DNA from: Sphyrna mokarran
Lineage: Eukaryota
Reading direction: 5' to 3'
DNA length: 64,000 bases
NCBI GenBank assembly: GCA_024679065.1
Contig: JAGIQG010000040.1
Location: forward strand, 12,090,001-12,154,000
Below are positions 1,268 to 61,620 of this stretch, in pieces (position 1 is the stretch's first letter; every line of letters begins with the position of its first letter). A program made the translations under genes and the position numbers. The notes beneath the pieces are model-generated. The model ran no database searches. It saw only the letters and a program-made list of their open reading frames with translations, and had not been told where the DNA came from.

Positions 1268-3184
1268 GTGAGTTTCTCTATCCATTTTTTAAAAATTCCA
1301 TAAAACATATTGAACTGTATTTTTCTTCTGCGTGTCTTCATTTTGAAAAAATAAAATGAATTCATCCTCTTCAGCTAGTCACTAATTCCATTATCAATAT
1401 AGTGGCCCTTATGTCCCTCTCCGGCTTCTGTCTGGGGCTGTTCACAACTTCCAATTTCTTCTCGACCCAAACTAGATTTCCAACATCATATTCCGTACAT
1501 CCAGATCCAATCCACTGTCACCCCCAACTCTGCCTCAGCTCAGCCGGGTAATAAGACATCGTAGCCTTGCTAATTTTATCAATCTTGCGATTGAATCCTC
1601 CAAGGTTTCACTTTTGCTACTAATCCCATTCTCCTGTCCTTTTCCCAGATTCCTGCAAATTCTTCCCATTCATGATTTCCCGAATTACTCGTTTGAAATG
1701 TATTTATTTTTCGCCTCCTGTTTGTGATTCATCTCCACATGTTCATCATTGCGAGCTTATAGAAACACAGAAACAATAGATTGAAATGGGAGGCGCCCTC
1801 ATTCACTTCCCGCTGCCTTCTGTGGGATACCTATGTTGGAGGGGACATTTGAACATCTCTGACACATGCCACATGTCTTTGTAACTTGGTTTATGCCTGT
1901 CCATTAGTCATTCCCAGCAGGACGTATGTTCAGCCACACGAGAAAGCTCCCTTTAATTTTTATTTTTATCTTAAATATATTTGCTTTCTGTTAATTTAGC
2001 ACACAGTCATAGCTGGTGGAATGCAGATTGATAATTTACCCATATATAAATATGGACGAATCCATTAGAATTCAATCACAGTGTTCTGTATGCACAGAAC
2101 TTCCACATATACAAAAAAGAGAGATGAATTAACAACAGGGGATAAAAGAGGATAACCGTCAGCAGTGTGTACTAGCTACAAGACGCACTGCAGCAATTCA
2201 ACAACGGTTCTTAGACAGTACATTCCAAAACCACAATCGCTTCCATCTTGAAGGATAAGAGCAGCAGAAACATGGGAACACAAGCACTTGCAAGTTCTCC
2301 TCCAAGCCACTCATAATCCTGACTTGGAAATATATTGGTTATTCCTTCGCAGTTTCTGGATCCGAATCCTGAATTCTTCCTCAATGGCATTGTGGGTCAA
2401 CTTACAACACATAGACTGCAGGGATTAAAGATGGAAGCTCACCACCACGTTCTCAAGGGCAACTAACGAGGGGCAATAAATGTTGGCTGGCCAGTGACGC
2501 CCATGTCCCATGTACACACCATGCTGTAGAGAGGCAGTGCTACCTAGCCTATGGACAGCTTGTAACAGAGGTCAGACCTTATGGAGCCAGTGTATTTGAG
2601 GTTGGGGTTCCATACTTGCCAGAGTGTGTCAGATTTGGATCAGGATGTATAAGTTAGGAATTCCATTGGGGCACGTTCCATAACAATTGGATGCCAATTC
2701 TGAACAGAAGGAGACTATTCACTGATCCATGACCAAAGGATATTCCTTGCATATGTTAGGATATTGTCCACATTTTTCCAATTGGCATCATTTTTTTAAT
2801 CTTTGATCCCCAGTATCAAGAAAATAAAAGTCAAATTGTCAGACTACATCAAATATCGTCTCCAGCTCTTTAAATATGCCCAACCAGTAGGATTTAACTT
2901 TAATATAGGAACAAACTTAACAGCTTTTTTCAAGGTTCACAAATGGTCCTAATTAATATTATTTTATCCCATGTCTCTGAAGGTATTTCAAGTGATCATC
3001 CTAGTATCTTTTAAATGTTGTCAGTCTGTCAGTGTGTATGTGTCGTGTCTACAGGAAGGATGTTACCAGCTATTTACTCCACACTCCTGAGGCCAGAGAA
3101 TTTCACAAAAAGCCAAATCTTCATTCACAGCCTCAGGATGGGAAAATTCCACTGACCTGAATGGCAACGAATTTCCTTCTCTGT

Positions 3185-3570
3185 GTTCGTGTGTGTGTTT
3201 ATCTGTGTGTTTATGCATATGTTTGTGTGTGAATTTGTGTGATTTTGGTTTGAGTTTCTGTTTCTATTATATATTTCTGTGCATGTATGCCTGTCTCTAC
3301 ATATGTCAATGTATGAGTGTGTGTGCGTGCATGTGTGTTTATGTGTATGTGTGTGTGTGCGTGTGCTTGTGTGTTTGTGTGTGTGTGTGTGTTTATCTTT
3401 GTGTGTATGTTTCTGTATATGAGTGTATATGGGTTTGATTTGATATATTTCTGTCTGCGTGTGTTTTTGTGTGTCTGTGCATGTGTGTGTGTTTATCTGT
3501 GTGTGTGTTTCTGCATATGAGTGTGTATGTGTGTGATTTGACATAATTCTGTGTGTTTGTGTGTGTGCGT
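3185..3570. repeat. (TG)n-rich simple repeat in GPCR intron
   Basis: Degenerate TG dinucleotide run that produces spurious C/V and H/T ORFs. Confidence 0.9.
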
Positions 3571-4239
3571 GACTAGCTCTGAGCACCAGCTCACCAATCT
3601 TTCAGAATAAAAGCCAAAAGAAAAATCCAACATCTATTTGTCTTCAAGAACCGAAGGGATAATCATTTTCGGTCTACAAACATTTCAATATCCATCTTAA
3701 GGAGCAAAAAGTATGACATCTTCTGTTCTGCATTTTTAATAGTCTAATTCCAACCCTGGAGGATTTAAGCACTCTCTCTCACAAAGATATCTTGTTGCAG
3801 TGAGTAAATCTTTGTGAAAAGATGGAAATTATCCACACTTCTCTCTGCCGCTAACAGGCCCATCATCTTTGGCCCATCCCAATCATCCCAACTCCCTAGC
3901 ATTCCTGAGTTCTCAATCACCTCTGCCTCCCACTGCTGTCACCAGGATCCCGCTTCACTTTAAGTTCTCTGCGTCACCTCTGACTCCATGTGTCATTTCT
4001 GCCTCCTCTGTTTATTTCATAGTGTAATCATAAAAATTATAAGGTCTCTGCAGTTCAGTAGGAGTCCATTCAGCCCATCAAATCTGCACCGTCAGTAATG
4101 CTGCCCATGCCCTATCATTGTAACCTCACGCTGTTCCTCTGACATTAAGGGGAAATTCAAAAGAAGTCTGTTCCTCGTACCCCGAGATATTTACTCTGCT
4201 AATCCCCCTGATCTGTGCATCTTTGGATAATCCACTTAA

Positions 4240-4525: not shown

Positions 4526-4715
4526 AGCTAAATCTATGATATGAAGGAATCTGTGATTCCTCCCATTGTATCACAGACGTTTCCATTATATTCTGTATTT
4601 ATCCTCATGCAATACAGGGTGCAGTAGAAAGTGTCAATAACTCCTCATTCAAATTGGTCATTTTGCCAGGAAGCTGATGCATATTTTCATTGTTTATTTC
4701 CTTCCTTCCTTACAG

Positions 4716-5614
4716 TGAACTTAGTCACGATTGTGATCCTCATCCACAAAAACTGTGATCTCTCCAAATGTGTCACTCGTTACCTCATGGCCATGTCATT
4801 GGCGGACCTTCTGGTTATTATACTCGACCTGATATTGAGACACATTCCAGTTGTTTTTAATGAACAATTTATTTTCCTGGAATCCATCCCCGTGTGCAAC
4901 ATCCACGCTGTCCTGCTTTATGCAATCACTGACTGTTCTGTCTGGTTCACCGTCACTTTCACCTTTGATCGATTTGTGGCCATTTGTTGTCAGAAGCTGA
5001 AAATTAAATATTGCAGTGAGAAAACGGCGATTGTGGTCCTGGGAACAGTGACAGCACTGAGTTGTTTAAAGAATATTTTCTGGTATTTTATGGTAACAGG
5101 TCAGTATATATTGATAAATGACCCTTGGTTTTGTAATTACTCATTTGATGTCATGTTTTCTCCAGTCTGGGGAGCAATTGTGTTCCTTCATTACATTGTA
5201 AACCCGTGTATCCCATTTGTTCTGATTCTGCTGTTCAATGTTCTCACCGTCAGGCACATTTTAGTGATGAGCCGGGCCCGCAGGAGACTTCGGGCTCAGG
5301 GCAATGGGGAGAGTCTCAAAGACCCAGAGATGGAAAGTCGAAGGAAATCCATCATTTTACTGTTTGTTATTTCAGTCAATTTCATCCTGTTATGGTCAAC
5401 GTTAATGGTTGATACTTTGGCTTTTCAGATGTTCTGGTTGGGGTATCCATCCCTATATAACAAAGCATTTGTTCAGGATTTGGGCTTCATGCTGCAGCTT
5501 CTGAGTTGCTGCACCAACACTTTTATTTATGTGGTAACCCAGAATAAGTTTAGGGAGCAGTTGAAAATTCTGCTGAAGTATTCATTTACTCCAATTCTCC
5601 ACTTCATTAAATGA
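4716..5614 (+). CDS. GPR139/GPR142-like class A GPCR, coding exon 2 (TM1-TM7); spliced product about 357 aa
   Basis: Polypyrimidine tract plus TACAG acceptor at 4711-4715. Motifs YLMAMSLADLL, TDCSVWFTVTFTFDRFVAICC, PCIPF and LSCCTNTFIY; seven hydrophobic segments; stop at 5612-5614. Confidence 0.88.
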
Positions 5615-7431: not shown

Positions 7432-8050
7432 TAGAACATAGAACATAGAACATAGAACATTACAGCACAGAACAGGCCCTTCGGCCCTCGATGTTGCGCC
7501 GACCCATATAAAAAGCAATGCCCCTCCAAACTAAACCATTCCCTTCTCTTCCATATACTTATCAACTAACTCTTAAACGCCACCAAACTTGGCGCATCTA
7601 CAACTGCTGCAGGCAGGGCATTCCACTCCCGAACCACCCTTTGGGTAAAGAACCTGCCTCTGATATCCGTCCTATAACTATCACCTCTTAATTTAAAGCT
7701 GTGTCCCCTCGTGCTAGCTTTCTCCATCCTAGGGAAAAGGCTATCACTGTCCACCCTATCTAAACCTCTAATCATCTTATATGTTTCAATAAGGTCTCCT
7801 CTTAGCCGCCTTCTTTCTAACGAAAACAACCTCAAAATCCCTCAGCCTCTCTTCATAAGACCTGCCCTCCATACCAGGCAACATCCTGGTAAACCTCCTC
7901 TGTACCATCTCCAATGCCTCCACATCTTTCTTATAATGTGGGGACCAGAACTGCACACAATACTCCAAGTGCGGCCCCACTAGAGTTTTGTACAGTTGCA
8001 ACATGACGTTACGGCTCCAAAATTCAATCCCCCTACCAATAAAAGCTAAA
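7432..8050 (-). mobile_element. 5'-truncated CR1-type LINE (RT C-terminus plus 3' UTR)
   Basis: ORFs with PHLEYCVQFWSPHYKKD and LFSLERRRLRGDLIE; (ATAGAAC)n tail; closely similar to the 3' end of the element at 30781. Confidence 0.9.
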
Positions 8051-9719: not shown

Positions 9720-10550
9720 CTCTTTTTCTCTATATCTCTGTTAGTATGATTTTGTGTGTGTGTCTCTACACACCACTCTACATATCTGTGTGCTTCTGTG
9801 TATTTCTCTGTTTCTGTGTCTCTTTCTGTCTCCTTGTCTGTACCTGTGTATCTCTCTGTGTTTCTGTACTTCTCTGTATCTATGACTCTCTATGTCTGTG
9901 TATCTATGTCTGTGTCTCTATCACTCTGCCTCTCTCTCTGATTCTGTCTCTCTCTCTGTCTCTGTATTTCTCTATATTCATATCTCTCTGTGTCTCTGTG
10001 ATTTTTTTTCTCTATTTGTCTCTGTGTTTCTCTGTGCCTTTGTCTTTTTTCTCTCTGTGTGTCTGTTTGTCTCTGTATTTCTCTGTGTCTCTGTATTTCT
10101 GTGTTTTGCTCTGTGTGTGTCTGTGTGTCTCTATGTTTCTCTGTGTCTCTGTATTTCGGTGTTTTTCTCTGTGTGTGTCTGTATGTCTTTGTGTCTCTGT
10201 GTTTCTCTGTGTCTCTGTATTTCCGTGGTTTTCTCTGTGTGTCTGTGTGTCTTTGTATCTCTGTGTTTCTCTGTGTCTCTGTATTTTTCTCTCTATGTGT
10301 CTCTGTGTTTCTCTGAGCCTTTGTGTTTTTTCTCTGTGTGTCTGTGTTTCTCAGTGTCTCTGTCTCTCTGTGTTTTTCTCTCCCTCTGTCTGTGTGTCTC
10401 TGTCTGTCTGTGTTTTCTCTCTGTGTGTCTCTGTCTCTCTGTTTTTCTCTCTACGTTTCTCTGTGTTTCTCTGTGTCTCTGTCTCTCTCTGTGTCTCTGT
10501 GTCTCTGTCTCTCTGTTTTTCTCTCTCCGTGTTTCTATGTCTCTGTATTT
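9720..10550. repeat. CT/GT-rich low-complexity repeat
   Basis: Degenerate (CTCTGTGT)n; all ORFs here are compositional artefacts. Confidence 0.9.
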
Positions 10551-11039
10551 AAGACAGATATAAGTGACATACGGCACAGATTCTAGTAACAGAGAGAGGT
10601 TCAGTGCTTAGTTTACTGATTCAAGGCTCACATTGTAATAATGGGAGAGGTTTAGCACAGAGATTATTGATACAAGGCTCAGATTGCAATAACAGAGAGG
10701 TATAGGGCAGAAGAGGTTTAGGACAGAGATTACTGATAAAAGGCCCAGACTGTAATAACCAAGAGTATATTAATTGTAGTTAATAGTTTTCTTGTAGTTT
10801 AATTTTCATGTATAATCAAATAACTTTTCTCGTTCCTTATTCACAATTGTTCATTTTCTGTGATGTTGAGCTGTGTTTTTCCTCTTTCTGGTCTCTGTTA
10901 CAGTTGTACAGAAACTGGGCAGTTCAGAATTTTTTTGAGACAAAGCTGATTTTTCCTAATATTCCCCCCGCCATCAAACTGAGACAGCGATACTCCCACC
11001 TGCCCCCTGTTCCCCCCAAGTACATTTGCCCCAGTGTCA

Positions 11040-23336: not shown

Positions 23337-23379
23337 ATGGGAATCCTTCTTGTTTTCACTCTGTGTGCCTGTTTACCCC
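23337..23379 (+). CDS. Leader exon of NAR-TCR-type V, copy 1 (MGILLVFTLCACLP)
   Basis: ATG, hydrophobic signal peptide and phase-1 donor C|GTGAGT; splices in frame to the V exon at 23528. Confidence 0.88.
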
Positions 23380-23527
23380 GTGAGTATCGATCAAACTAAC
23401 CCACATTGTGTGGATTGGATATAAAGCTGTCCCAGCCCATCCCAATTACAGACACTGTTTGGGGTTTTAGCCCCGTTGTGTGGTTCGGATCTGATGGTCC
23501 ATTAAACTCTCTGTGTTTAATTTCCAG

Positions 23528-23817
23528 GATCTTTCAGCCAGTCGGTGGTACAGAGCCCAGAAGCGGTGACCAAGAAGGAGTGTCAGTCTCTCACCATCAA
23601 CTGTGTTTTCTATGGCGGATTCTTTGCTCGCCCTTTGGTTAACGGCGAGTTCTTCAAACAAACCCAGCCCGGGAAGGAGTGGGAGCCGATCCCCAGCGGA
23701 GGGAGATTTATTGTTTCTGTGAACGAAGCAGGAAAGACATTTTCGCTGGAAATTCGGGATGTGAGAGTTGAAGACGCCGCCACCTATTACTGTAAAGCTC
23801 ATTATAAATACAAGACA
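23528..23817 (+). CDS. NAR-type (NAR-TCR) V gene segment, copy 1, unrearranged
   Basis: Acceptor TTTCCAG. QSVVQSPEAVTKKECQSLTINC...GGRF.VSVNEAGKTFSLEIRDVRVEDAATYYCK has VNAR-like frameworks, a deleted CDR2 region and an extra FR1 Cys. Followed by an RSS. Confidence 0.9.
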
Positions 23818-23855
23818 CACAGTGATGGGCCTCGGCTTCCCGCGATACAAAAAAC
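23818..23855 (+). promoter_or_regulatory. V 3' RSS (22-bp spacer, 23-type)
   Basis: CACAGTG, 22 nt, ACAAAAAAC. Confidence 0.9.
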
Positions 23856-24217
23856 TCTCGCTGCAGATTCTCACAGAACCAAAGCAAAAACCGGAGTTTA
23901 TCTACCCTGAACAATCCCCCCACCCCCCACTACCCCTCCCACCTGCCAATTCCCACAATTGTACCTCACACTCTCGGTGCCACAGTTTATTTTTAATAAG
24001 ACCTGATTATCACCGTTGCTATGTTGAGTTTTATAAAGACGGAGTGTGAGTGGATGGGGCTGTCATTCCCGGGAGTGCTGTCGGTGAATTGAGAATGGAA
24101 ATGACTGATCCCAGTTACAAACCCTGACACCAGATGGGATCCTCGGCTCACAGCCGGAACTGGGAGCCACTTTCCGCGCTGTTTAATTCATGTTCCAACA
24201 TCCCACCCAGTCCCCGA

Positions 24218-24289
24218 GGTTTTGATGCTGAATTGTAACACTGTGTAATATATGGGGAGGTCACGGTGGAAAGAAGCTGAACAAATACC
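24218..24289 (+). other. D segment (24246-24261, TAATATATGGGGAGGT) with 12-RSS on both sides, copy 1
   Basis: GGTTTTGAT-12-CACTGTG [D] CACGGTG-12-ACAAATACC. Confidence 0.9.
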
Positions 24290-24640
24290 TGTGCACAATT
24301 ACACTATCAATACTCAGTACCCAGAGAGTTAATCATTGGTTTGATGATATTATCGCTGTGATCGGGATTATTTCTACTGTAATCTCCACCATTCACATCT
24401 TTCCTTGATTTTTTTTGCTATATATAAAGTGAATATTTCCTTCCTGCGGCCATTTACTGAGAGCTAAGGCCTCAGAAAATTACAATTTGAACCGACAGAG
24501 ACGTTAAAACCTTGAATATTATTTATTGATTTTAAATCCCCCGAATAATTGGACACTTCCGAATGACTGGTGATGGTTTTCCGGCAGATTGAGATATCGG
24601 TGATTTTTGTACCGGGGAGATTGAAGGCGGAGTCACTGTG

Positions 24641-24698
24641 TATGAATGGAAAAATGCTGATGCGGATGGACCCGGGACGGTGGTGACTGTCACAGCCG
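24641..24698 (+). CDS. NAR-type J segment, copy 1 (YEWKNADADGPGTVVTVTA), with 23-RSS at 24602-24640
   Basis: GATTTTTGT-23-CACTGTG; GTVVTV like IgNAR J; phase-1 donor G|GTAAGT. Confidence 0.9.
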
Positions 24699-37959: not shown

Positions 37960-39210
37960 GGAAGGAAACATAGGAACATTGAATATGGGAGCAGGAAGAG
38001 GGGTTTGGCCTTTCAAGCATGATCTGCCATTTATTATGATCATGATTGAGCATCCACTCAATAGCCTAAACCCGCTTTCTCTCCATAACCTTTGATCCCA
38101 TTCGCCCAAGTGCTATATCCAACCGCTTCTTGAATGCATTCAATTTTCTGGCAACAACTACTTCCTACTTTCACAGGCTCATCACTTTTTGGGCGAAGAA
38201 ATGTCTCCTCATCTAATATATCTTGTCCTGTTCGAATTTTATAAGTCTCTATGAAATCCATTGTCATCCCTTTCAGTAAGTCTCCCGAATATATGAAGGT
38301 CAAATCACGCCTCATATCTTCATAGTCTCCTTTATTAAGATTCAGCACAGTAATCTCCGAGTCAACTGCTTCACTCTCACCTTGATTAAAAAAAAAAAAT
38401 CTCTCATGTTATGTTCCAAGGGGAACCCCCAAGGGGTCACACGCAGCTAGATTGGCAATTATCACTTTCTCACTACACAGTTCCCAGTCCAAGATGGCCT
38501 GCTCCCTAGTCAGTTCCTTCACATATTGATCAGGGAAACCATCCCGTATCGGATTCAGGAAATCGACAAATGAGCATTGTGCTAATTTGATTTGCTCAAT
38601 CAATGTGCAGATTAAAATCACTCTTTATCACCGATATTTCCTCATTACATGTATCTCTAATTTCGTGTTTAATATCATTTCCAATATCACCACTGCATTT
38701 CCGTTGCCCGTATATGACATTCACGGATATTTTTTGCCCGTTGGTATCTCTCAAATCTACTCATACAGATTCCAATTACTAGACCTAATGTGTTTTTCAC
38801 CAGTTTGCTAATTTCCTCTTTACCAGCAGTGCCACTGCAAAACCTTTTCCTTTTTGTCTGTCCATCCTAAATATTGAATACTCTGGGACATTCAGTTCCC
38901 ATCCTTGGGAACTCTGCAGCCATGTCTCCGCAATTCCAATTATAGCATGTCCATTTACATCTATCTTCAAGATTAATTCATCCACTTTGTTGCAAATGCC
39001 CTGTGCATTAAGGCACGGAACCTTTAAGTTTGTCAATTTCACACTGGTTGTCTCGTTCTCAGTATTTTTCTCTATAGCCCTTTATGAGTGTTGTCTTTAG
39101 TTTCTCTTCCTATCATGTTTTTAATCCCCTTTCTACCGCTTTTTTTATACTTGTTCCCTCCTTCCCTGACTCCTTACATAAGTTCCCAACCACCTGGCAC
39201 ATTAGTTTCT
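37960..39210 (-). mobile_element. Old CR1 APE/3' fragments
   Basis: CLNAQGICNKVDEL, IAETWL and QYVKELTREQAILD. Confidence 0.7.
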
Positions 39211-40196
39211 TTGCGTGACGGTGTAGTATTGTGAGGTGGTGAAACTGAAAGGAGGCAATGCCCCAGTGGTGTTATCCTAGATTATTAATCCGGGAAATCA
39301 ATCAGTGTTCTGGGGACCCTGCGTTGGAATCCTACCATGGCAGATGGTGGAATTCAAATTTAATAATCTGGAATTAAGAATCTACTGCTGACGAAGGAAG
39401 TAACTGTTGGAAAATCACATCTGGTTTAGGAATGTTCTTTACAGAAAGAAATCTGCCATTCTGATCTGATCTGGCCCTCATGTGCAATTTGGATGACTCT
39501 CAAGGGAAGTTGGGAATGGATAATAAATTCTGGCCAGACAATGGTGCCCATGTCCCACGACCAAATAAACATCTCTCTCTCTTTGAAAATAAGTCCGAAT
39601 AGCTGTTGATACAGCTAAATGGAAACATGTCTTTCAGACTCAACATGTCTGCTTACCTCTTCGAAATCTAACAGGATTATGAAAATAAAAACAGATAATG
39701 TTGGTTAAAAAATAGGTCAGGAAATATCTGTAAGGAGAGAACGCTTAGCTAACAAATTAAATATTATCTGTTGAATTGTATTTATTTTCTGCCAGATGTT
39801 GAGGCGCTACTGGCAACACCATGTTGCAAATTGCTGTTAAGCCATTTCAGAGATTGGCAGAGCAGGAGCGAAGAGCTGAATGGCCTTTCCTTGTTCCTTT
39901 GTTCCCTAACAAAAGTTCAGAGGCAAAATATCTCTGTTGCAGGGGGAGGACATGGATTGCTTTATTTGACCAGTGGCTACCCTGGCTCAAAAATTCTTCA
40001 CGTTGGTAGAATCCTAGAGCACCCAAGGAGGCCTTTCGGCCCACTTAGCCTGTGATGGTGGGAAAGGATAAGATATGCAATATCTGTTATCTGCAGCGAA
40101 TCAGTGACTGTTCCAACTTTATCTTTGCCGTGAATTGTCTGAAATCTGAAACAGCTATCACAATAGAAGGTTTCTGTCTGAGCAATTGTTTCTGTG

Positions 40197-40246
40197 ATAT
40201 GAAAAGCTGACGTTCAGCAGCGGCACCCAGGTGACAGTTATACCAA
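40197..40246 (+). CDS. Second TCR-type J segment (YEKLTFSSGTQVTVIP) with 12-RSS at 40169-40196; copy 1 only
   Basis: GGTTTCTGT-12-TTCTGTG; KLTF..GT motif; phase-1 donor A|GTGAGT. Confidence 0.82.
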
Positions 40247-40879
40247 GTGAGTGTGAAGTCAGTGTGTTTTTATTCTTTCACTCCACATCTCCTCTGTGAT
40301 CTAGTTTTCTGTTGTAAGTAGTCTAGTCAACTTGGGCAGAGTGCCAACATAATATGTGGCATGCAGGCGAGGGGATTGTTCAGTTTTGAGTCAGTTTTGA
40401 TCTAGCTCAGTTTACCCAGGCATTAGAGGTACATTGGGAAGGAGTTGGGACTGCAGGCCTCAATAATATGTTATTGAACTGAGAATCAGATTTGTGTCCG
40501 GTGAATGGGATAGGAAGATTCCATTCAGAGAGTTGATTTAAATGAGAGAGCGGAGACGAATAAGCATCTTTGTTCTGTTTAAAACGTTGGGATTGTGAAT
40601 TACACAGGATTTTCATTTTCTTGGCGAAAAATAAACTCTCCTCATATTAGTTCCATATTCTTTGAATATGAACCCTGGTTCTGGACCCTGCCTCCACTCT
40701 GCATCTACTCTGCCTAATTCTGCATTACATGTTTTAGTGACATCTTCTCCTCTTGCCTTCCTCCTTCTGAATCCCAGACAATAAAATCCTAACCGGCTCA
40801 ATCTCCCCTCATATGTCAGTCCTGCCGCTCCAGAATCTGTCCAGTGAACTTCCCTCCACTCCCTCTTTAGCATCTGCAC

Positions 40880-41390
40880 TGCACTAGTCTACCTTTTCGG
40901 CTATCCCTTTAAAAATTCATTCAAATTTATGAGATACGATTTTCCACTCACAAAGCCATGCTGAATGTCCCTAATCATTCCTTGCATCTCTGAATGACTG
41001 TAAATCCTTCTCTCAAAAAATATTTCAACAATTTACCCACCCAGATGTGAGGCTCACTGGTCTGGAGTTTCCAGGCTTTTCCCTGCAGCCCCTTTTGAAA
41101 CAAAGACACAACATTTGCCACTTTCCAATCTTCAGGCACCTCACCTGAGTCTAACGATGATTTAAATATCTCTGCTAGGGAACCCGCAAATTTCTCCCTC
41201 GCCTCCCATAATATCCTGGGATACACCTCATTAATTTTCGGGGATTCATCGATCTCAATGCGCTGTTAGACTTCCAGCACCTCTTTCTTTGTTATATGTA
41301 CACTCCCAAAGACATCACTATTTTTTCCCAAGTTCCCAATGATGCTTTTGTCAACAGTGAATACTGGTGAGAAATATTCAATTAGGATCT
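40880..41390 (-). mobile_element. CR1 ORF2 fragment; paralog at about 59800-60320
   Basis: YPRILWEAREK...GEVPEDWKVANV. Confidence 0.8.
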
Positions 41391-41761
41391 CACCCGCGTG
41401 TGTTCGTGTGTGTGTGTGTGTGTGTGTGTCTGTGCAATGGATTGTGTGCCTGCTTGTGTGCCCAGNNNNNNNNNNNNNNNNNNNNNNNNNNNNNNNNNNN
41501 NNNNNNNNNNNNNNNNNNNNNNNNNNNNNNNNNNNNNNNNNNNNNNNNNNNNNNNNNNNNNNNNNNNNNNNNNNNNNNNNNNNNNNNNNNNNNNNNGGAG
41601 AAAAGGATTATTTATCCCATCTTAGCATTCGGTAAGTTAATGGAGAAACTTACATAGGGTTAAGACACAGGAGAAATGTGATCTAATCGAATGGCACAGC
41701 AGGTTGGGGGATGTCACCCTGTTGGATTCTGATTTTTTTTTCCTTTTATTTTCATTTTTAG

Positions 41762-42064
41762 AGGCGAAAGGCCCGGAAAAACCAAAATTGAGCGTCTTTT
41801 ACCCGCCAGTGCCACCGGGAGCCACCAACACCAGCACCGCTACAGTCTGCTTGGCCTCGGACTTCTCCCCCAAGGCAATCCAGCTCTCCCTGTACACGGG
41901 ATCCGGCCAGGAGGTCAATGTGACAAGATCCAGTGTCCCATTGGAGAGCGGGAATTACAGGAGCTCGGGTTTCCTCTCTTTCCCCCAATCAGAGAAATCG
42001 CCAAACATCACATGCAAGGCATTTCACAATAATCAGAATTACTCAGTAAACATCCCGCCCACTG
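41762..42064 (+). CDS. Ig C1-set constant exon, TCR-delta-like
   Basis: Long polypyrimidine acceptor TTTTAG; 303-nt phase 1-1 exon. KPKLSVFYP...VCLASDFSPK...SGNY...ITCKAFHN has both Cys but no C-strand Trp, as in C-delta. Donor G|GTAAGT. Confidence 0.85.
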
Positions 42065-42852
42065 GTAAGTTTAATTTACTTCCGTTCATGTGATGTGGTT
42101 TGACCAGCATTTATTGCCCCTCCTAAATTGCTCTTCAGCAGAGGGCATTTAAGTTTCACTTACCGGCCAGACAGTGTAAGAACGGCAGATTTCCTTCCCT
42201 AAAGGATATTAGTGAAGCAGATGAGTTTTAATGATAATCGACAATAATTTCATTGGTCATCATTAGACTTCTAATTCTATTTCTTTAACATTCAAATTTC
42301 ACATCTGTCATGGTGAATTTCGAACACACATCCCCATATCGGTATTCTGTGTCCTTGGATTGACAATATCACTGCGCAACTGCCTCCTCTGAGAGTGTTT
42401 TTGGATAGGAAGAACGCCCATTAAATATTACCCATCCTTTTATCACTCTCAGTGTCATCGTCCTTCAGAATGTTGTCTTTTTGAAAGATTGGCTGACTAA
42501 TGATTGAAGGTCAATTATTCTAGTATCGGGACTTCACTGCAGGAGTTCCTCAGTGTCTCAGAACCAATCAGCTTCAGTTGCTTCATTAATCACCTTCAAT
42601 CTATTGTTAACGTCGGATGTTGGGATGTTCGTTGATAACTGAACAATGTTCAGCACCATTCATGACCCCTCAGATCATGAAGTAATGCATTACAAATGCA
42701 GCAATAGCTGGACAATATCTAGGCTTANNNNNNNNNNNNNNNNNNNNNNNNNNNNNNNNNNNNNNNNNNNNNNNNNNNNNNNNATGAGCTTTGTACCTCA
42801 GATAATGGAGCCTTGCTTGTCCGACTTATTTGAAATAGTATAGGTTTATATG

Positions 42853-49663: not shown

Positions 49664-49706
49664 ATGGGAATCCTCCTTGTTTTCACCCTGTGTGCCTGTT
49701 TACCCC
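49664..49706 (+). CDS. Leader exon, copy 2 (MGILLVFTLCACLP)
   Basis: ATG...CCC C|GTGAGT. Confidence 0.88.
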
Positions 49707-49854: not shown

Positions 49855-50133
49855 GATCTTTCAGTCAGTCAGTGACACAAAACCCGGCAGAGGTGACCAA
49901 GAAGGAGTGTGAGTCTCTCACCATCACTTGTGATTTGTATGGTTCTGCTTATGCTCGCTTAGTAAACGGCGAATTCTTCAAACAAACCCAGCCCGGGAAG
50001 GAGTGGGAGCTGATCTCCAACGGAGGGAGATTTACTGTGTCTGTGAACAAAGCAGGAAAGACATTTTCGCTGGAAATTCGGGATTTGAGAGTTGAAGACG
50101 CCGCCACCTATTACTGTAAAGCCAAGTACAAGA
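49855..50133 (+). CDS. NAR-type V segment, copy 2, with 22-spacer RSS at 50134-50171
   Basis: QSVTQNPAEVTKKECESLTITC...DLRVEDAATYYCK; CACAGTG-22-ACAAAAACT. Confidence 0.9.
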
Positions 50134-50517: not shown

Positions 50518-50589
50518 GGTTTTGATACTGAATTGTAACACTGTGTAATATATGGGGAGGTCACGGTGGAAAGAAGCTGAACAAATACC
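50518..50589 (+). other. D segment (50546-50561) with 12/12 RSS, copy 2
   Basis: Coding part identical to the copy 1 D; same heptamers and nonamers. Confidence 0.9.
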
Positions 50590-50941: not shown

Positions 50942-50991
50942 TAAATATTATGATGTGGATGGATCCGGGACGGTGGTGAGGGTCACAGCCG
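50942..50991 (+). CDS. NAR-type J segment, copy 2 (KYYDVDGSGTVVRVTA), with consensus 23-RSS at 50903-50941
   Basis: GGTTTTTGT-23-CACTGTG; donor G|GTAAGT. Confidence 0.9.
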
Positions 50992-53900
50992 GTAAGTGGC
51001 TCCAAATCCCGTCTTGTTACAGTCTGTCTCCTTTAATCTCCCCCTTCACTTTATCATTGTGATCAGTCTGGTTTCAATCCCATCCAATCTTCTTATGGAA
51101 AATCATCTCTAACAAATTACGAGTTGGGAGCAGGGTGTAATTCTGGAACCGGCTCCATTTCAGTCCCGGGGAAAGTCTCTTTGAGAGCTGATGGAGTCGG
51201 CGGTCAGTGGGACAGGGATAGTGGGACGAGGCTTCAGGGGAGAGGGTGGTGAGGCACGGGGTGGGGGTGCCAGTGTTAGGTGTGATGTGGGAGTTGAGAA
51301 TCTGGATGCTTATCGGTTTAAGGAGCACATCAGCATCAAGAACTCTGACACTTCTGACAGCTTTTAACACACTCAACACTCCGGAATCCACTCTGGATGT
51401 TAACTGTGACTGAGGGAGATCTGGCTGTCGCTTCCAGTCCGACAACGGGGTCACAAAGCTCTCTCTCCTGGGCAGTAGATTGCAGTCCTAGCCCTGGAAT
51501 GTCAATGAAATACCGGCTGACTGAGATCAGTGTCATTGCAGCCGGTTTATTTAACCGCAGCGACTCATTCAATACCTGAACCAGGAGACAAAAAAAGGAA
51601 AATTGACACAACGGACCTCAGGAATAATGAACTTATTGCTGTCGGAAGGAATGTTTTAATAGAGAAATCAGTGACTGAACTTACTGACGTTCGACCCGAT
51701 ATTTCTTTAAATAGCCTTCGTTTAACAAATCACTTTAGTTTTCTTAGTTCAAATTACTACCGTTAATGGTTAGTCCTGGAGCATAGATCTTCAGTAATTT
51801 TGCCAGGATATTTTAGGGCCAATAGCTTTTTGCAGAATCCAGTACTATGTTCTAGTACCTTCAGCCGGTGCTCAGTTTTGTAGAGTTAATTAAACTGACA
51901 TCACTGATGTTGGGGATCTCTGGAGGAATTCCAGATGGATCATCCAAAGGATATCTGTGCAGGAAGAATGTTGGCACTGCTTACACTTTATCTTCAGCAG
52001 ACTGACAACTCACTTATAGAGATACTGCTGGGATTGCCTCCTGAAGTCTTTCATTGAACAAGTATTACTCTCTTGTTCGCTAATGTCAATGCAGGGGACA
52101 TGCTGGCTCATGAGGTTACAGATTTTGTCTGAGTATAATTCTGCTGTCCATGGCCCATTGTGCCTTAGATGCCAAGCAATCAGTTGCTAAATCTGCCGGA
52201 AATCTATTCTGTTCGGTCTGATGACGGTGCCACACTACAAGATGGAGCGTAGCTCAATGTGAAGTTAGGGCTGAGAGAGGGGGATGATGTGGAAATCGTT
52301 GAGGGAGAACAGGAGAATAGCAAAGAATTGTGATGAGATTTTTTTGAACAAGCAATACGCAATTAATCGACAGGGAGAGATAGGTCGGATTATCTCTGGA
52401 GAATGCTAAAAATATAATTATCACGAATTGATAATGAGACTTGTGGAAGTTCGGAGTGAAATGGACTCCTGTCGGGAATACTGTGTAAAATTTGGTCTCC
52501 TTTGTTATAGAAAAGTCAACATACTTTGGAGGGAATTTACATTTTCTTTTGTGAAGAGATTGAAGACCCAGATTTTAATTTGAGGTTGGAGGAATTAGGA
52601 GTGATCTCATTAGAATTTACAATAATCTCAAAGGACTAGACAAAGCATATTTTAGGTGGTTGTTTTTTTTTTCCTAGGCGGGGGAGTCTATAACTTGAGG
52701 TCACATTTTCAGAATAACAGTTCAGCCATTTGGATTAAGAAGAGGAGAAATTTCTTCAGTCAAAGCCATTGTGGTGAATCTGAGAATTCTGTACAGCAAA
52801 GAGCAGTGGTTAGTCTGTGTTAAACACATTCAAGGCAGCGTTTGTTATATATCTGTTCACTAAAATAGTCCGGGGGAATGGGTCAACGCAGGAATTTCTT
52901 GTTGAGGCAGAAGATAAACTGCAACGTTACTGACCGATGGCGTAGCTTTGAAATGTGAAACGGCCGCTCTTCCTTCTATTAGTTGGAAATTTTGCTTCGA
53001 TTTCTGCATTTCTCAAGAAATCAATCCGCAACAATTTCTGGGGTCTCTTTACATCTGGAGATTAGAGAACAGTGAAGAGGATTCATGGAAATGGTTCATG
53101 TAACGAACAGGTTAATGAGATGTATGTGACCAAATTATTTATTTTTCGGTGTGTCTGGAGCAAGGGGCTATTAATATCTGATAGTGTTACAATCCCAGTT
53201 GATGTTACTATTGGATAGGAAGCTCCCAGATGAAAATTTGACTGGAAATAATGTAGTGTATTCTTCTGTTTCAGAACAATGGGGGGAATTAAATAACTGG
53301 ATGGCCAATTAGATTTTAATAATAGAAGATAAAAATATTTATCAATCATGAAGAAATTTTCTATGTCACAATTTACTATGACAGCCCAACTCTTCATGAC
53401 TGTACAAGACTTTAAGGATAACACAGATTGCAAAATAAATCTTTGCTATAATGTACCCTGTAAATGCAAACTCTGTAAAGCAAAAGGTCATTGTCTTCAG
53501 CTACACCCCATTCCAATACCCAGTGGTAGATACCATACAATCAAATTTCTGTGAATTGCTCCTCAAAACCCCACAGATCATTAAAAGCTATGAGCCAACT
53601 GGCCTCTCCAGACTCTCACATAGACACGAGTGTTTCCCATTCCCCACGTTCGAAAAGTCATATCTTTGGTAAATTCTACCAAATAATTCTTTGCCTACTC
53701 TACTTTCAGCAAGGATCCACTTCCAGAATTTCGCATTTTGATTTCACTATTCCTCTATCTTGAATTCCCATGTGCATTCAAGTTTCCATACAAGCTCAGA
53801 GGTGTGTCGCCATGCCAATACTGCTTCATTGGCCTCACCAATATTATGATTATATCTGAAAGCTGGCTGGCCAACTTCACCAGGTCTGTGCAGTTCAGCT

Positions 53901-56619: not shown

Positions 56620-56930
56620 ATTCTCCTTCCCTGGTATCCAAGAATCCGCCTCTCCAAATCTCTGCTGCCGATGACACGGTTACTTTAAGCTGTGAATATT
56701 CAGGGTTCTGTCAGTACACAGTGCACTGGTACAGTCAGTCCCCAGGACAGGGTCTGAAATACTTGCTTCAGAAAGACACTTCCGGAGGGGACAATAAAGA
56801 AAACGCTGCCGGAGGGAGAACTTCTGCTTCTATCGATTCTGTTGAGAAAATCAGCCGGTTAAAGATCTCCGAACTGCAACTAAATGACTCGGCTACCTAT
56901 TACTGCGGACTGAGTCGGCAAAGCCTGAAC
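56620..56930 (+). CDS. Leaderless supporting TCR-type V segment, copy 2, with 23-RSS at 56931-56969
   Basis: CTGCAG acceptor; ...SCEYSGFCQYTVHWY...DSATYYCG; CACGGTA-23-GCAATAACC. Confidence 0.9.
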
Positions 56931-57196
56931 CACGGTAGTTGAATCTCTCTTAACACCCGTGCAATAACCTCCTAGCACCACAGGAGAAAACCAAGCTCTC
57001 TCAATAGCACCCTCCCAACACCACTCCCCATCACCGCCTTCCATCCCCATGGAGTGTACACAATTACTTACCCCCATCACCCCCTCCCCATTCCCCACCA
57101 CCCCATCCCCCTCATTCCCGGTGCTGGGACACGGCAGAAGGACAGAGAGAGGTGGAGGAGGTCACTATGGATCTGGTTATGGAATCAAACAGCGTG

Positions 57197-57257
57197 TAAC
57201 ATGGAGAGACTAGAAAGCTCATCTTTGGCAATGGAAGCAGGCTGATTGTGGAACCCA
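57197..57257 (+). CDS. TCR-type J segment, copy 2 (HGETRKLIFGNGSRLIVEP), with 12-RSS at 57169-57196
   Basis: Coding sequence identical to 30608-30668; GGATCTGGT-12-CAGCGTG. Confidence 0.9.
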
Positions 57258-60200
57258 GTAAGTAACTAATCCTGAATAATTATTACTCAACATGTTATTT
57301 CCCCTTCATGACTTCATGGAGCCATACAGACACTGCGTTATTTCAATTAACACTATATTTGTATGGAACGGGTGAGCAGTTCTCATTGAGAATCTAAACA
57401 GCAGCTTCACTGGGCATTGAGATAGAGCAGATGAGAGCTTTATTGTTTCCACAATTCAGGATTGTTTCCTTAAAACATTTAACTGGCCTTTATCATAAAA
57501 CCCACCTGATACCTGGCAAGGAGATGTATTGCTGAAATTGTTGTGTGTAATGCAATTAAATGAGAATGAGAGAGAGAGAGAGACTCCTGCTCAGCCACGC
57601 CTAATATATAACATGGCTTTCTCAAGCTCTCAGCGTTTCACAAAAAATCTAGCGACTTCTTATAAAAATAGCTATCACTGAAAGCAGAGCAATTCTGCTT
57701 AAATGCACCACTGGGCGAAGCGAGGCAATTTGGTTTTTAATTTGTGCGTGGATGTGCATATATTTGTAGGATTTTCTAAGATGCATTGTCCCTCTCTTGG
57801 TGATAGATAATTTTTAAGGTTTACTTTTCGCATACGATGGCAGTTGTCGAAGCTCCCACTCACATTTATGAACATGGCAGTATCCTTATTTTCGATATTG
57901 GTTGGAATCTGAATAAGTTGCTGCGCTTGTAGATTTCTGCTGATAACTGTTCACAGTGCTCATTACTATGACGGTACTTAGAAACTCAACTTTGGGTGCG
58001 GGAGCCAACTGAATATTGCGCCAAATAGGTGTCAGCTGATTTATCTTTACCCTTCGACGGACATTTCTGGTGAACCCATGTCTGGAGAGTGGTGACAAAA
58101 AGCGAAATCAATGCTTAAAATTAAAAGAAAGCTGTTAGATGTATTAATGCATCATTAGATATTTAATTAGAATGGTCGAGATCCAAAGGATACAATCAGT
58201 AAATTCGTAGATATCACACAAATTAGTGGTGTAATAAATAGCGAAGAGGGAAACCTTACATTATTGATCAATATAGGAGGTTTGGTTAAATGGACAGAGA
58301 AGTAGAAAATTGGAAGTTAACTTTAAAAAGTGTAATGTGATGCATTTTGGCAGGACTAAAGAGGGCAAGGATATGTACAGAAATTAATGAAAACTGCATG
58401 GAAGGAAAGTTAAACTGCCGGCTATGTCTTCAACATTTTTGAAACAGAGAAAAAACAAATAAAACAAAATACCTAAATGGGGATGGGTTTCAGGGAGATG
58501 AATAGTTGCATTTTTTCTTTAGAGATCATCTGGCATTATAATTTGAATCCTAATCTATGGTCAAATCACCAAATAGGTCAAAAACAACCTCTTGCATTAT
58601 CCATTAGAACTGATGAATCACAGTCATTCTTTGTTGGATCTTGCTGTGCACTGTGATTTGACGCAGTTGGGTTGCTTTCTGGCAATCATTTCTAGAAATG
58701 GATTGCGTCACCGATAATAACATGTTCTCTCAGTTTGTCTCTCAACATGGAAAATGAAAGCTGAAACCGAGCATATATGGTAGAATCATTTAGCATGGAA
58801 CGGCGACATTCAGCTCCTCGGATAGATGTGGCCCTTTTATAAATGAAATCCAATTCTTCCACAAGCTATGAATGTTGCTGATAAATCTGTAACAGATTTG
58901 TGTAGCGTCTGCTATGATTGCTCAGACATTGAATCCAGGAGTTAGGGCGTTTTGGTGAAGTTGTGCAAGGCATTGGCAAATTCACACTTGGAATATTGTG
59001 TACAATTCTGGTCACCCGATTATAGAAAGGATATAATTAAACGAGAAAGAGTGCAGAAAAGGTTTACTAGAGGTAGTATAGAGGCGGATACAATTTTGTC
59101 TTTTAGAAAGTTACATTGGGTAAGGTGGGTATAGAGGGAATTGGGGCAAGTGTTGGCAATTGGGTTTAGCTTTAAAAAGAAAATCTGCATGAACAAGTTA
59201 GGCCGAAGGGCCTGCTTCCATGCTGTAAATCTCTATGATTCCTTGACTCTATGATGTGTCATCCCCACAACTGAAAGATTGATCCTTGGTACTTGAACAA
59301 AACTCACTGTGGAAAGTCGAATGCATTCTCACAAAGTTACATTACAAAGCACTTATATAGCCCGTCCCTAAATGTGGAAGGCAGTGGGGAGTTGCCTTGT
59401 TGAATCTGCTGCACTCGTCCATGTGTTGTGTGTATTATTCCATCCTGCCTACAAAACATTCCCATTGTGTGGAGAGATTGTGGGGAGTGTGATGGCCCGT
59501 GGCTACTTGAGGTGAGCAAGTGCATTAAGTTTCTGATTATTCTTCCCCTCAAAGTTCTTTTTTACACGATCCCAGTAAATAATGTATTGGCCTGTTATGT
59601 TCAAATGGATGGGAGGTTGAGAGCATTTATATTTTTACCTGGATATAACCTGCCCTGGCTATTGCAGTCAGCCAGGGCTATTGCCTCCTGCCTTCCTTCT
59701 TCTGAACCCCAGACAATAAAATCCTAACTGGCTCAATCTCCCCTCATATGTCAGCCCTGCCGCTCCAGAATTCCTCCACTCCCTCTTTAGCATCAACTGT
59801 ACTGCACTAGTCTACCTTTTCGGCTATCCCATCAAAAATTCATTCAAATTTATGAGACACGATTATCCACTCACAAAGCCATGTTGAATGTCCCTAATCA
59901 GTCCTTGCATCTCTGAATGAATGTAAATCCTTCTTTCAAAATATATTTCAATAATTTACCCACCCAGATGTGAGGCTCACTGGCCTGTAGTTTCCAGGCT
60001 TTTCCCTGCAGCCCCTTTTAAACAAAGACACAACATTTGCCACTTTCCAATCTTCAGGCACCTCACCTGTGTCTAACAATGATTCAAATATCTCTGCTAG
60101 GGAACCCGCAAATTTCTCCCTCGCCTCCCATAATATCCTTGGATACACTTCATTAATTTCCGGGGATTCATCGATCTCAATGCGCTGTTAGACTTCCAGC

Positions 60201-60759
60201 ACCTCTTTCTCTGTTATATGTATACTCCCAAAGACATCATTATTTTTTCCCCAAGTTCCCTAACAACGACGCTTTTGTCAACAGTGAATACTGGTGAGAA
60301 ATATTCAATTAGGATCTCACCCGCGTGTGTTCGTGTGTGTGCTCGTGTGCGTGTGTGTGTGTGAGTGTGTGTATGTGTTGTGTTCGTATATGTGTGTGTA
60401 TGTGTCTGTGCATGTATGTGTGCCNNNNNNNNNNNNNNNNNNNNNNNNNNNNNNNNNNNNNNNNNNNNNNNNNNNNNNNNNNNNNNNNNNNNNNNNNNNN
60501 NNNNNNNNNNNNNNNNNNNNNNNNNNNNNNNNNNNNNNNNNNNNNNNNNNNNNNNNNNNNNNNNNNNNNNNNNNNNNNNNNNNNNNNNNNNNNNNNNNNN
60601 NNNNNNNNNNNNNNNNNNNNGGAAAAGGATATTATCCAGTCCTCAGCATTCGGTAAGTAAGGAAGAAACTTACATAGGATTAATTTTTGTCGTGAATTTT
60701 CAGCACTTTTGTCTTTTTCTGAATGTATTTTGAGGCCCAAGTAAGAGCCAATGTTATAT

Positions 60760-61620
60760 GATTGTGATCAGCAAGTTTGCAGACGATACAAAGATGGCTG
60801 GACTTGCGGATAGTGAGGGGCACTGTCAGGCGATGCAGCAGGACATAGATAGGCTGATAGCTTGGGCAGACAGATGGCAGATGGAATTTAATCCTGGTAA
60901 ATGCAAGGTGATGCATTTCAGGAGAAAGAATGTGTGGGGGGGAGGTATATGATAAAGGGTAGACCTATTAAGAGTACAGAAACGCAGAGGGACCTGGGGG
61001 TGCAGGTGAACAAGTCTCTGAAGGTGGCAGAGCAAGTGGAGAAGGTTGTGAAGAAAGCATATGGTATGCTAGCCTTTATAGGAAGGGGTATAGAGTACAA
61101 GAGCTGGCCTTTTAATGTTGCAGTTGTATAAAACGTTGGTTAGACCTCATTTGGAATACTGCGTCCAGTTCTGGTCGCCTTACTACCGGAAGGACGTGGA
61201 GACTCTGGAGAGAGTGCAGAGGAGGTTTACCAGGATGCTGCGTGGTATGGAAGGCCTGAGTTACGAGGAGAGGTTAGGCAAATTGGGACTGTTTTCCTTG
61301 GAAAATCGTAGACTTAGAGGAGATCTAATAGAGGTGTACAAGATTATGAGGGGTATAGGTAGAGTAGACAGGGTTAAGCTTTTCCCTAGGAAGGACTCGA
61401 ATAGCACGAGGGGTCCTGGGCTTAGGGTGAGAGGGGTAAGGAATAATTTGGATACTGGAGGGAGTTTTTTCACACAGAGGGTGATGGGGATATGGAATGC
61501 GCTGCCAAGTAAAGTGGTGGAGGCAGGCACTCTGGAGTTATTTAAGAAATACTTAGATGGGCACATGAACAGAATGGGAATGGAAGGGTATAGAAAACTG
61601 ATTTAAAATAGGGATTATGA
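60760..61620 (+). mobile_element. 5'-truncated CR1 LINE
   Basis: SKFADDTK, RPHLEYCVQFWSP and RRLRGDLIEVYK. Confidence 0.9.

Follow-up and report, generated by a model that had tools for sequence, protein, structure and literature searches.

Can a T-cell receptor (TCR) of a cartilaginous fish be encoded in tandem clusters, each with joining (J) and constant (C) segments of its own? To our knowledge, translocons are the textbook plan for TCR loci throughout the jawed vertebrates, including sharks, and a cluster layout is regarded as characteristic of shark antibody genes and mammalian TCR-mu. Criscitiello et al. are said to have placed the NAR-TCR, a TCR-delta chain with two variable (V) domains of which the outer one is of the new antigen receptor (NAR) type, within the TCR-delta translocon in 2006, using the common diversity (D), J and C segments of that locus. 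The question is raised by 64,000 nt of Sphyrna mokarran DNA (contig JAGIQG010000040.1; the whole stretch is hereafter the window, and all positions are window coordinates), which hold two tandem NAR-TCR units in the same orientation, with the elements of both on the plus strand. We consider it probable, at roughly two chances in three, that these are two units of a cluster-type (minilocus) NAR-TCR. An earlier note on this DNA had proposed a self-contained locus of this kind, and its inventory can be retraced: the leader (L), the NAR V, D and J, the leaderless V, TCR-type J segments and a C-delta-like exon all lie on the plus strand at or near where it had placed them (Table 1), with splice sites that are all phase 1 and 12/23 recombination signal sequences (RSSs) that are mutually compatible.

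Self-comparison of the window delimits a tandem duplication of 26.3 kb, the collinear blocks of which are 91.5–95.6% identical between the units (91.8% over 16,631 aligned columns), and a further L-V-D-J-V-J unit does follow downstream of the C exon of unit 1, as the earlier note had claimed. Its assignment to the NAR-TCR is likewise borne out by the published hallmarks of these chains (PMC1845163; here and below, sources given by PMC number are cited for the portions of them available to us), which the delta locus has been described as encoding (PMC5931798). In both units, the outer V is preceded by a leader, carries a cysteine in the a-b loop directly ahead of the first canonical cysteine and lacks the tryptophan of the WYRK motif, which is replaced by FFKQ; the supporting V of both units has no leader, opens at a phase-1 acceptor and contains a cysteine in complementarity-determining region 1 (CDR1). 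When the exons were searched singly in Pfam and against solved structures, all five immunoglobulin (Ig) segments exceeded the curated Pfam cut-offs, four of them as V-set domains and one, the C exon, as a C1-set domain. The RSSs of the outer domain obey the 12/23 rule in both units (23-type for V, 12/12 for D, 23-type for J), and strong signals in a scan for consensus RSSs are confined to the expected segments, which therefore follow the grammar V23, 12-D-12, 23-J in the outer domain and V23, 12-J in the supporting domain. Compared with predicted proteins of the shark Mustelus asterias, the window sequences are 70–80% identical in the NAR V and 78–90% identical in the supporting V.

An intron of about 5.3 kb separates the NAR J from the supporting V, and the NAR J donors and supporting V acceptors of both units are all phase 1. 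Directly behind the supporting V, at a distance of 270 bases in both units, lies a J segment (J1). The earlier note had counted two TCR-type J segments; such segments do exist, but three were found, of which J1 is good, J2 is a pseudogene and J3 is non-canonical. All three of unit 1 fall into the gap-free stretch 16562–41465, and the conclusion that J segments are private to these units is thus supported by uninterrupted sequence. J3 precedes the C exon by 1.5 kb and is homologous (74–88% at the amino acid level) to the J joined to C in three of the M. asterias models (P0007, P0008 and P0009).

Two heptamer-like sites stand 12 bases apart behind the supporting V (30330–30380 in unit 1, 56919–56969 in unit 2). 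The position of the first, CACAGCC, coincides with the end of germline models in other species; the second, CACGGTA, is followed by a 23-base spacer and a nonamer (ACAATAACC in unit 1, GCAATAACC in unit 2) and is retained in both units. Farther downstream, a 44-base block (30525–30568 and 57115–57158) is identical between the units while its flanks vary at many sites. A D segment between the supporting V and J1, which this block had suggested, was ruled out by the lack of an RSS pair; the block may represent a control element or the remnant of a D.

The C exon, searched alone against solved structures, ranks IgM CH1 and light-chain C domains first. An identity as an Ig CH1 domain was dropped, as a profile of seven shark sequences (the window exon included) searched against solved structures put TCR delta ahead. 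The nine best distinct matches to this profile score 78–80.5 bits (E-values from 1.4e-21 to 8.9e-21) and comprise seven human TCR delta constant regions or chains, one "TRA@ protein" and one "TCR", and an IgA1 heavy chain, with 58.8 bits, comes next after this TCR set. A tblastn search of the window agrees, with shark delta C sequences 49–52% identical to the exon and shark alpha C 26%. Identity of the exon is 48–52% to the delta C of five other sharks and 81–87% to the ten full-length copies of M. asterias, values that mark the window as DNA of a relative and not of M. asterias itself; in a phylogeny of C domains, it is placed with the Mustelus copies among shark delta C sequences, apart from those five sharks (support 85/84). 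Approximately unbiased tests reject neither a clade that joins catshark to the Mustelus-type sequences (p 0.19) nor a Mustelus-only clade (p 0.08), and the group formed by the window and Mustelus may simply represent the delta C of carcharhiniform sharks; we make no claim that the exon is an old paralogue distinct from the canonical delta C. Judged by its sequence, the exon is of TCR-delta type, in agreement with the earlier note.

The proteins nearest to the C exon are M. asterias models, in which exons for a connecting peptide and for a transmembrane (TM) region of the alpha/delta kind follow. The window-type C occurs in 13 predicted proteins of M. asterias, with C regions 81–99% alike, on contigs that number 12 when told apart by their lengths. 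Six of these models (P0003, P0007, P0009, P0010, P0011 and P0013) run in full from leader through NAR V, NAR J, supporting V, J and C to TM region, and they read through germline RSSs, which shows that unrearranged DNA underlies them. We placed this layout in context by a census of 94 proteins matched by P0011, which was split into four domains, each compared with the full protein set. In this census, by a protein search that reaches only proteins sharing words and of fitting length, models that combine NAR V and supporting V include C in 6 of 11 cases in M. asterias and in 1 of 58 cases in twelve other elasmobranch species (belonging to Cetorhinus, Heterodontus, Carcharodon, Pristiophorus, Scyliorhinus with two species, Stegostoma, Rhincodon, Hemiscyllium, Chiloscyllium, Pristis and Amblyraja). 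These counts leave aside P0036, P0044, P0085 and P0086, a model with NAR V only (P0087), one with supporting V and C (P0012), the models of Heptranchias, the delta chains with an ordinary V (P0014, P0016–P0018) and the alpha chains (P0088–P0100). The single case among the 58, P0020 of Cetorhinus, has 707 residues and additional V domains in between.

We lean, by a small measure, toward the view that in the carcharhiniform lineage to which the window species and Mustelus belong the NAR-TCR has left the translocon plan, and would form a multi-copy array of self-contained V-D-J / V-J / C-delta miniloci with a D-less supporting V, extending over more than 1 Mb. The layout in Heptranchias perlo, a hexanchiform shark, hints that the cluster plan may be older and wider, reaching far outside Carcharhiniformes: its model P0019 runs from NAR J through supporting V, a J1-like J and a J3-like J to C. 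P0019 and a second J-C model (P0015), with a different delta C, lie on one 1.7-Mb contig.

We hypothesize that a unit of this type would undergo two separate RAG-mediated joinings in cis, one assembling NAR V-D-J and the other the supporting V-J. Transcription would start at the NAR leader, and splicing from leader to NAR VDJ, supporting VJ and C, every junction being phase 1, would yield a three-domain delta chain with TCR-gamma as its presumed partner, in which the NAR domain would serve as a free and diverse binder and the D-less supporting V would contribute little diversity. The parts of this proposal differ in strength. A cluster-type NAR-TCR with private J segments appears well founded, and a private C is probable, resting on an island of sequence flanked by gaps and on the annotation of a relative. 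The copy in the window is incomplete as assembled. We infer the linkage of the C island, the presence of hidden 3' C exons, and the rearrangement and expression of the segments. Of the self-contained locus that the earlier note had envisaged, the private J segments hence stand, but C is represented by its first exon only, on the gap-flanked island, and unit 2 has neither a C exon in view nor a J3.

Several observations weigh against a cluster, and they have to be set against three other explanations. The window contains a single C exon, after unit 1; tblastn finds no further one in the window, and unit 2 has a reverse-transcriptase repeat where its C exon would be expected and no C exon in the 3.3 kb that remain to the end of the window. 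A single C exon would suit an ordinary translocon, in which the window would represent the 3' end of the TCR-delta V array, with the last NAR-TCR cassettes beside a shared J-delta and the one C-delta, and the unit behind C would be a local duplication irrelevant to the type of locus. J3 followed by C indeed resembles a normal J-delta/C-delta pair, and P0020 of Cetorhinus illustrates that an annotation pipeline can join a NAR cassette to a distant C, which matters here as the M. asterias layout is known from automatic NCBI protein predictions alone and some of the M. asterias contigs may be haplotigs. A translocon is also what surveys of sharks report, both for the TCR genes of cartilaginous fish in a 2019 review (PMC6795676) and for TCR alpha/delta in the four elasmobranchs of a 2025 survey (PMC12227049). 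However, J1 follows the supporting V in both units and not just in the last one, and in place of the classical TRA/TRD pattern of a single C-delta succeeded by a J-alpha array and C-alpha, the C exon is followed by a gap and a complete new L-V-D-J-V-J unit in the same orientation. The J-alpha segments and C-alpha that the earlier note associated with a canonical locus were looked for behind the C exon: there is no J-alpha array and no match to C-alpha in the 22 kb to the end of the window, where only J1 and the pseudo-J of unit 2 are found. The 13 C-bearing models of M. asterias, on 12 contigs and with differing C sequences, also speak against a single shared C-delta, and we regard an ordinary translocon as improbable.

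The position of the C exon itself has to be weighed against the state of the assembly. The window has five assembly gaps, three of them at 41466–41596, 42728–42783 and 60425–60620, and the exon is confined to a 1,131-base island with a gap on either side. No reading frame crosses the gap at 41466–41596 because this gap is intronic, with 1,219 bases between the end of J3 and the gap and 165 bases from the gap to the C exon. A repeat region could have been collapsed or misscaffolded here and the island placed between V units in error. Both units have gaps at matching, repeat-rich positions, and no contig bridges either gap beside the C exon in four DNA runs of related organisms, the contigs of which are short. 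The segments 40902–41204 and 42114–42315 have extreme summed contig depth in all four runs, and very high-copy interspersed repeats thus flank the C exon; the assembly may break around the exon because such repeats lie on both sides. In three of the four runs, unspliced contigs cross the acceptor or the donor of the C exon, and a C exon with introns therefore exists in relatives. Against an erroneous placement, J3, which is spliced directly to C in M. asterias models, belongs to the long contig without gaps that immediately precedes the island, and the island opens with 65 bases that are matched behind the corresponding gap of unit 2 (41600–41663 against 60622–60683, 84.6% identical), so that unit 2 repeats the order of (GT)n run, gap and 65-base match. 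The order from J3 to C across the gap is hence supported indirectly, by this repetition, by the position of J3 and by its homology. Even an island that came from a sister unit would still be a C within a NAR-TCR unit. A misplaced island appears unlikely.

A third explanation is that the units are duplicated relics that make no receptor and that the working NAR-TCR genes lie elsewhere. Several joining elements are defective or atypical: the nonamer of J1 is weak (5–6 of 9 positions), J2 is dead in both units (57952–58025 in unit 2; in-frame stops and no phase-1 donor), J3 reads F-S-S-G instead of FGXG and its segment is missing from unit 2, where the first heptamer behind the supporting V has also lost its CAC (CAAAGCC). 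Transposable elements (TEs) have inserted between J1 and C, no connecting-peptide or TM exon was found anywhere in the window (these exons may lie in the gap at 42728–42783, or the copy may be truncated), and no RNA run containing the stretch was found. On the other hand, both leaders, both NAR V exons and both supporting V exons are open, and the ratio of nonsynonymous to synonymous change (dN/dS) between the units is below 1 for both pairs of V exons (0.37 for NAR V, 0.71 for supporting V), which argues against a dead array, though use of the segments is not proven thereby. NAR V, D and NAR J have RSSs that come close to the consensus. Identity between the units exceeds the average of 91.8% in D with its RSSs (98.6%) and in the NAR J RSS (97.4%), and J1 is 100% identical in its coding part and 96.4% in its RSS; since perfect identity between the units is also seen in many non-coding stretches elsewhere, RSS conservation is weak evidence. 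Decay of the whole array seems to us quite unlikely.

The most divergent part between the units is the NAR V exon, at 83.4% identity. Its two copies (23528–23817 and 49855–50133) have a dS of 0.30 (15 silent changes, a small number), as compared with divergence of about 8% in the surrounding non-coding DNA, and exons and flanks may have had different histories, whether by gene conversion that affected the flanks, by exchange of the exons or by targeted mutation. The LINE (long interspersed nuclear element) insertion of unit 1 is young; it entered 110 bases behind J1, and a 92% identical fragment lies at 7438–8049.

Units with their own J and C have parallels in other lineages. The second TCR-delta locus of birds is a single cluster. 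As described in galliforms, and as TCR-delta2 in the duck, it resembles the window in having a copy of the TCR-delta C with its own V and J (PMC3457774, PMC5278385), but it encodes a two-domain chain with a VH-like V, whereas the window has two V domains and belongs to a type with many copies. The miniclusters of shark IgM, IgW, IgNAR and light chains are likewise repeated V-(D)-J-C cassettes, each believed to rearrange internally (PMC12227049), with the difference that they encode antibodies. TCR-mu of marsupials and monotremes shares more: it is a three-domain chain derived from TCR-delta, its genes form tandem clusters with an outer V-D-J, a supporting V of low diversity and a C of their own, and the supporting V of the platypus is also without D segments (PMC3457774, PMC7615758). 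The earlier note had called the locus TCR-mu-like, which is fair as an analogy of layout but does not extend to homology, as the outer V of the window is of NAR type and not VH, and its C groups with shark TCR-delta C. We regard the likeness as convergence of layout and not as shared descent, on a comparison that contained no TCR-mu sequence; the same sources that describe TCR-mu clusters call the NAR-TCR a convergent structure.

With the NAR-TcR as described so far, the window shares the leader and NAR-type V with their own D and J, the splicing of NAR J to a leaderless supporting V-delta with a CDR1 cysteine, the delta C and the three-domain chain (PMC1845163, PMC3457774, PMC5931798, PMC12227049). 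It differs in that each unit has its own J right behind the supporting V, with no D, and in that the C exon of unit 1 precedes the next unit. Our literature search found neither a cluster-type NAR-TCR nor several C-delta genes in a shark; figure 1 and table S1 of PMC12227049, on the TCR C genes of four elasmobranchs, lay outside it and may bear on the point. The tandem kit of V-D-J, V-J and C would thus be a plan known for shark antibodies and marsupial TCR-mu that is so far undescribed for shark TCRs.

If this reading is correct, it would be the first cluster-organised TCR of cartilaginous fish and a second, independent invention of the TCR-mu layout, in the genome as well as in the protein. 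Each NAR V would have a single supporting V, one or two J segments and a single C linked to it in cis; pairing would be fixed, the diversity of the supporting domain would be limited and the copies would be free to evolve apart. The array would offer a natural experiment on the interconversion of translocons and clusters, and a second case besides TCR-mu from which to ask why three-domain receptors of the gamma/delta type accompany a cluster layout. The claim is testable at once because the public annotation of M. asterias already includes the gene models, albeit unnamed.

Table 1. Segments, signals, repeats and assembly gaps of the two NAR-TCR units in the window.
Feature	Position	Strand	Remarks
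Unit 1	about 16562 to 42796	+	from self-comparison
Leader exon, unit 1 (43 nt)	23337..23379	+	donor GT at 23380, phase 1; 95.3% identical to unit 2 leader
NAR-type V exon, unit 1	23528..23817	+	acceptor AG 23526-23527, phase 1; Pfam V-set 33.5 bits (cut-off 26)
NAR V RSS, 23-type	23818..23855	+	heptamer CACAGTG (7/7), 22-base spacer, nonamer ACAAAAAAC (8/9)
NAR D with a 12-RSS on each side	24218..24289	+	D at 24246-24261 (16 nt); from RSS scan
NAR J 23-RSS	from 24602	+	nonamer 24602-24610 (8/9; 9/9 in unit 2), heptamer 24634-24640 (7/7)
NAR J, coding	24641-24698	+	donor GT at 24699, phase 1
Leaderless supporting TCR-delta V exon, unit 1	30037..30329	+	acceptor AG 30035-30036, phase 1; Cys in CDR1; Pfam V-set 52.5 bits
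Supporting V RSS region	30330..30380	+	first heptamer CACAGCC at 30330, second CACGGTA at 30342
J1 12-RSS (weak)	30580-30607	+	heptamer CAGCGTG 30601-30607
J1, coding	30608-30668	+	KLIFGNGSRLIVEP; donor GTAAGT, phase 1
LINE insertion	30780..34721	-	unit 1 only; open reading frame pieces for reverse transcriptase, endonuclease and a GDSL/SGNH-esterase-like protein
Pseudo-J (J2)	35308..35380	+	heptamer CACAGTG 35308-35314; J-like part 35315-35380; FGCG motif
3.7-kb segment	37062..40749		unit 1 only (break in collinearity); contains TE fragments and J3
J3 12-RSS (good)	40169-40196	+	nonamer GGTTTCTGT 40169-40177, heptamer TTCTGTG 40190-40196
J3, coding	40197-40246	+	YEKLTFSSGTQVTVIP; donor GT at 40247, phase 1
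Assembly gap after (GT)n run	41466..41596		inside the J3-C intron
TCR-delta constant Ig exon (C1-set)	41762..42064	+	phase 1 at both ends; Pfam 26.8 bits (cut-off 21)
Second assembly gap, at unit boundary	42728..42783		663 bases behind C exon; length only estimated
Unit 2	from about 42797 to at least 60363	+	from self-comparison
Leader and NAR V, unit 2	leader 49664-49706; V 49855-50133	+	open, with RSSs
NAR D and NAR J, unit 2	D 50546-50561; J 50942-50991	+	with RSSs; J open, donor GT at 50992
Supporting V, RSS region and J1, unit 2	V 56620-56918; J1 57197-57257	+	V-set above Pfam cut-off
Reverse-transcriptase-type repeat	60684..61606	+	unit 2; begins where unit 1 sequence continues toward the C exon

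Beyond the NAR-TCR units, long open reading frames (ORFs) at 3125–3586 and 9746–10586, rich in Cys/Val/Ser/Leu or in His/Thr, arise on both strands from microsatellite-like GT/CA-rich repeats and are not genes. A non-immune neighbor lies 11 kb before the first NAR-TCR unit, on the plus strand at 4631–5614: this intronless ORF of 327 amino acids belongs to the rhodopsin-type receptor family (Pfam 7tm_1, 52.5 bits), and its only relatives among solved structures are GPR139 constructs (E-value 1.1e-07).

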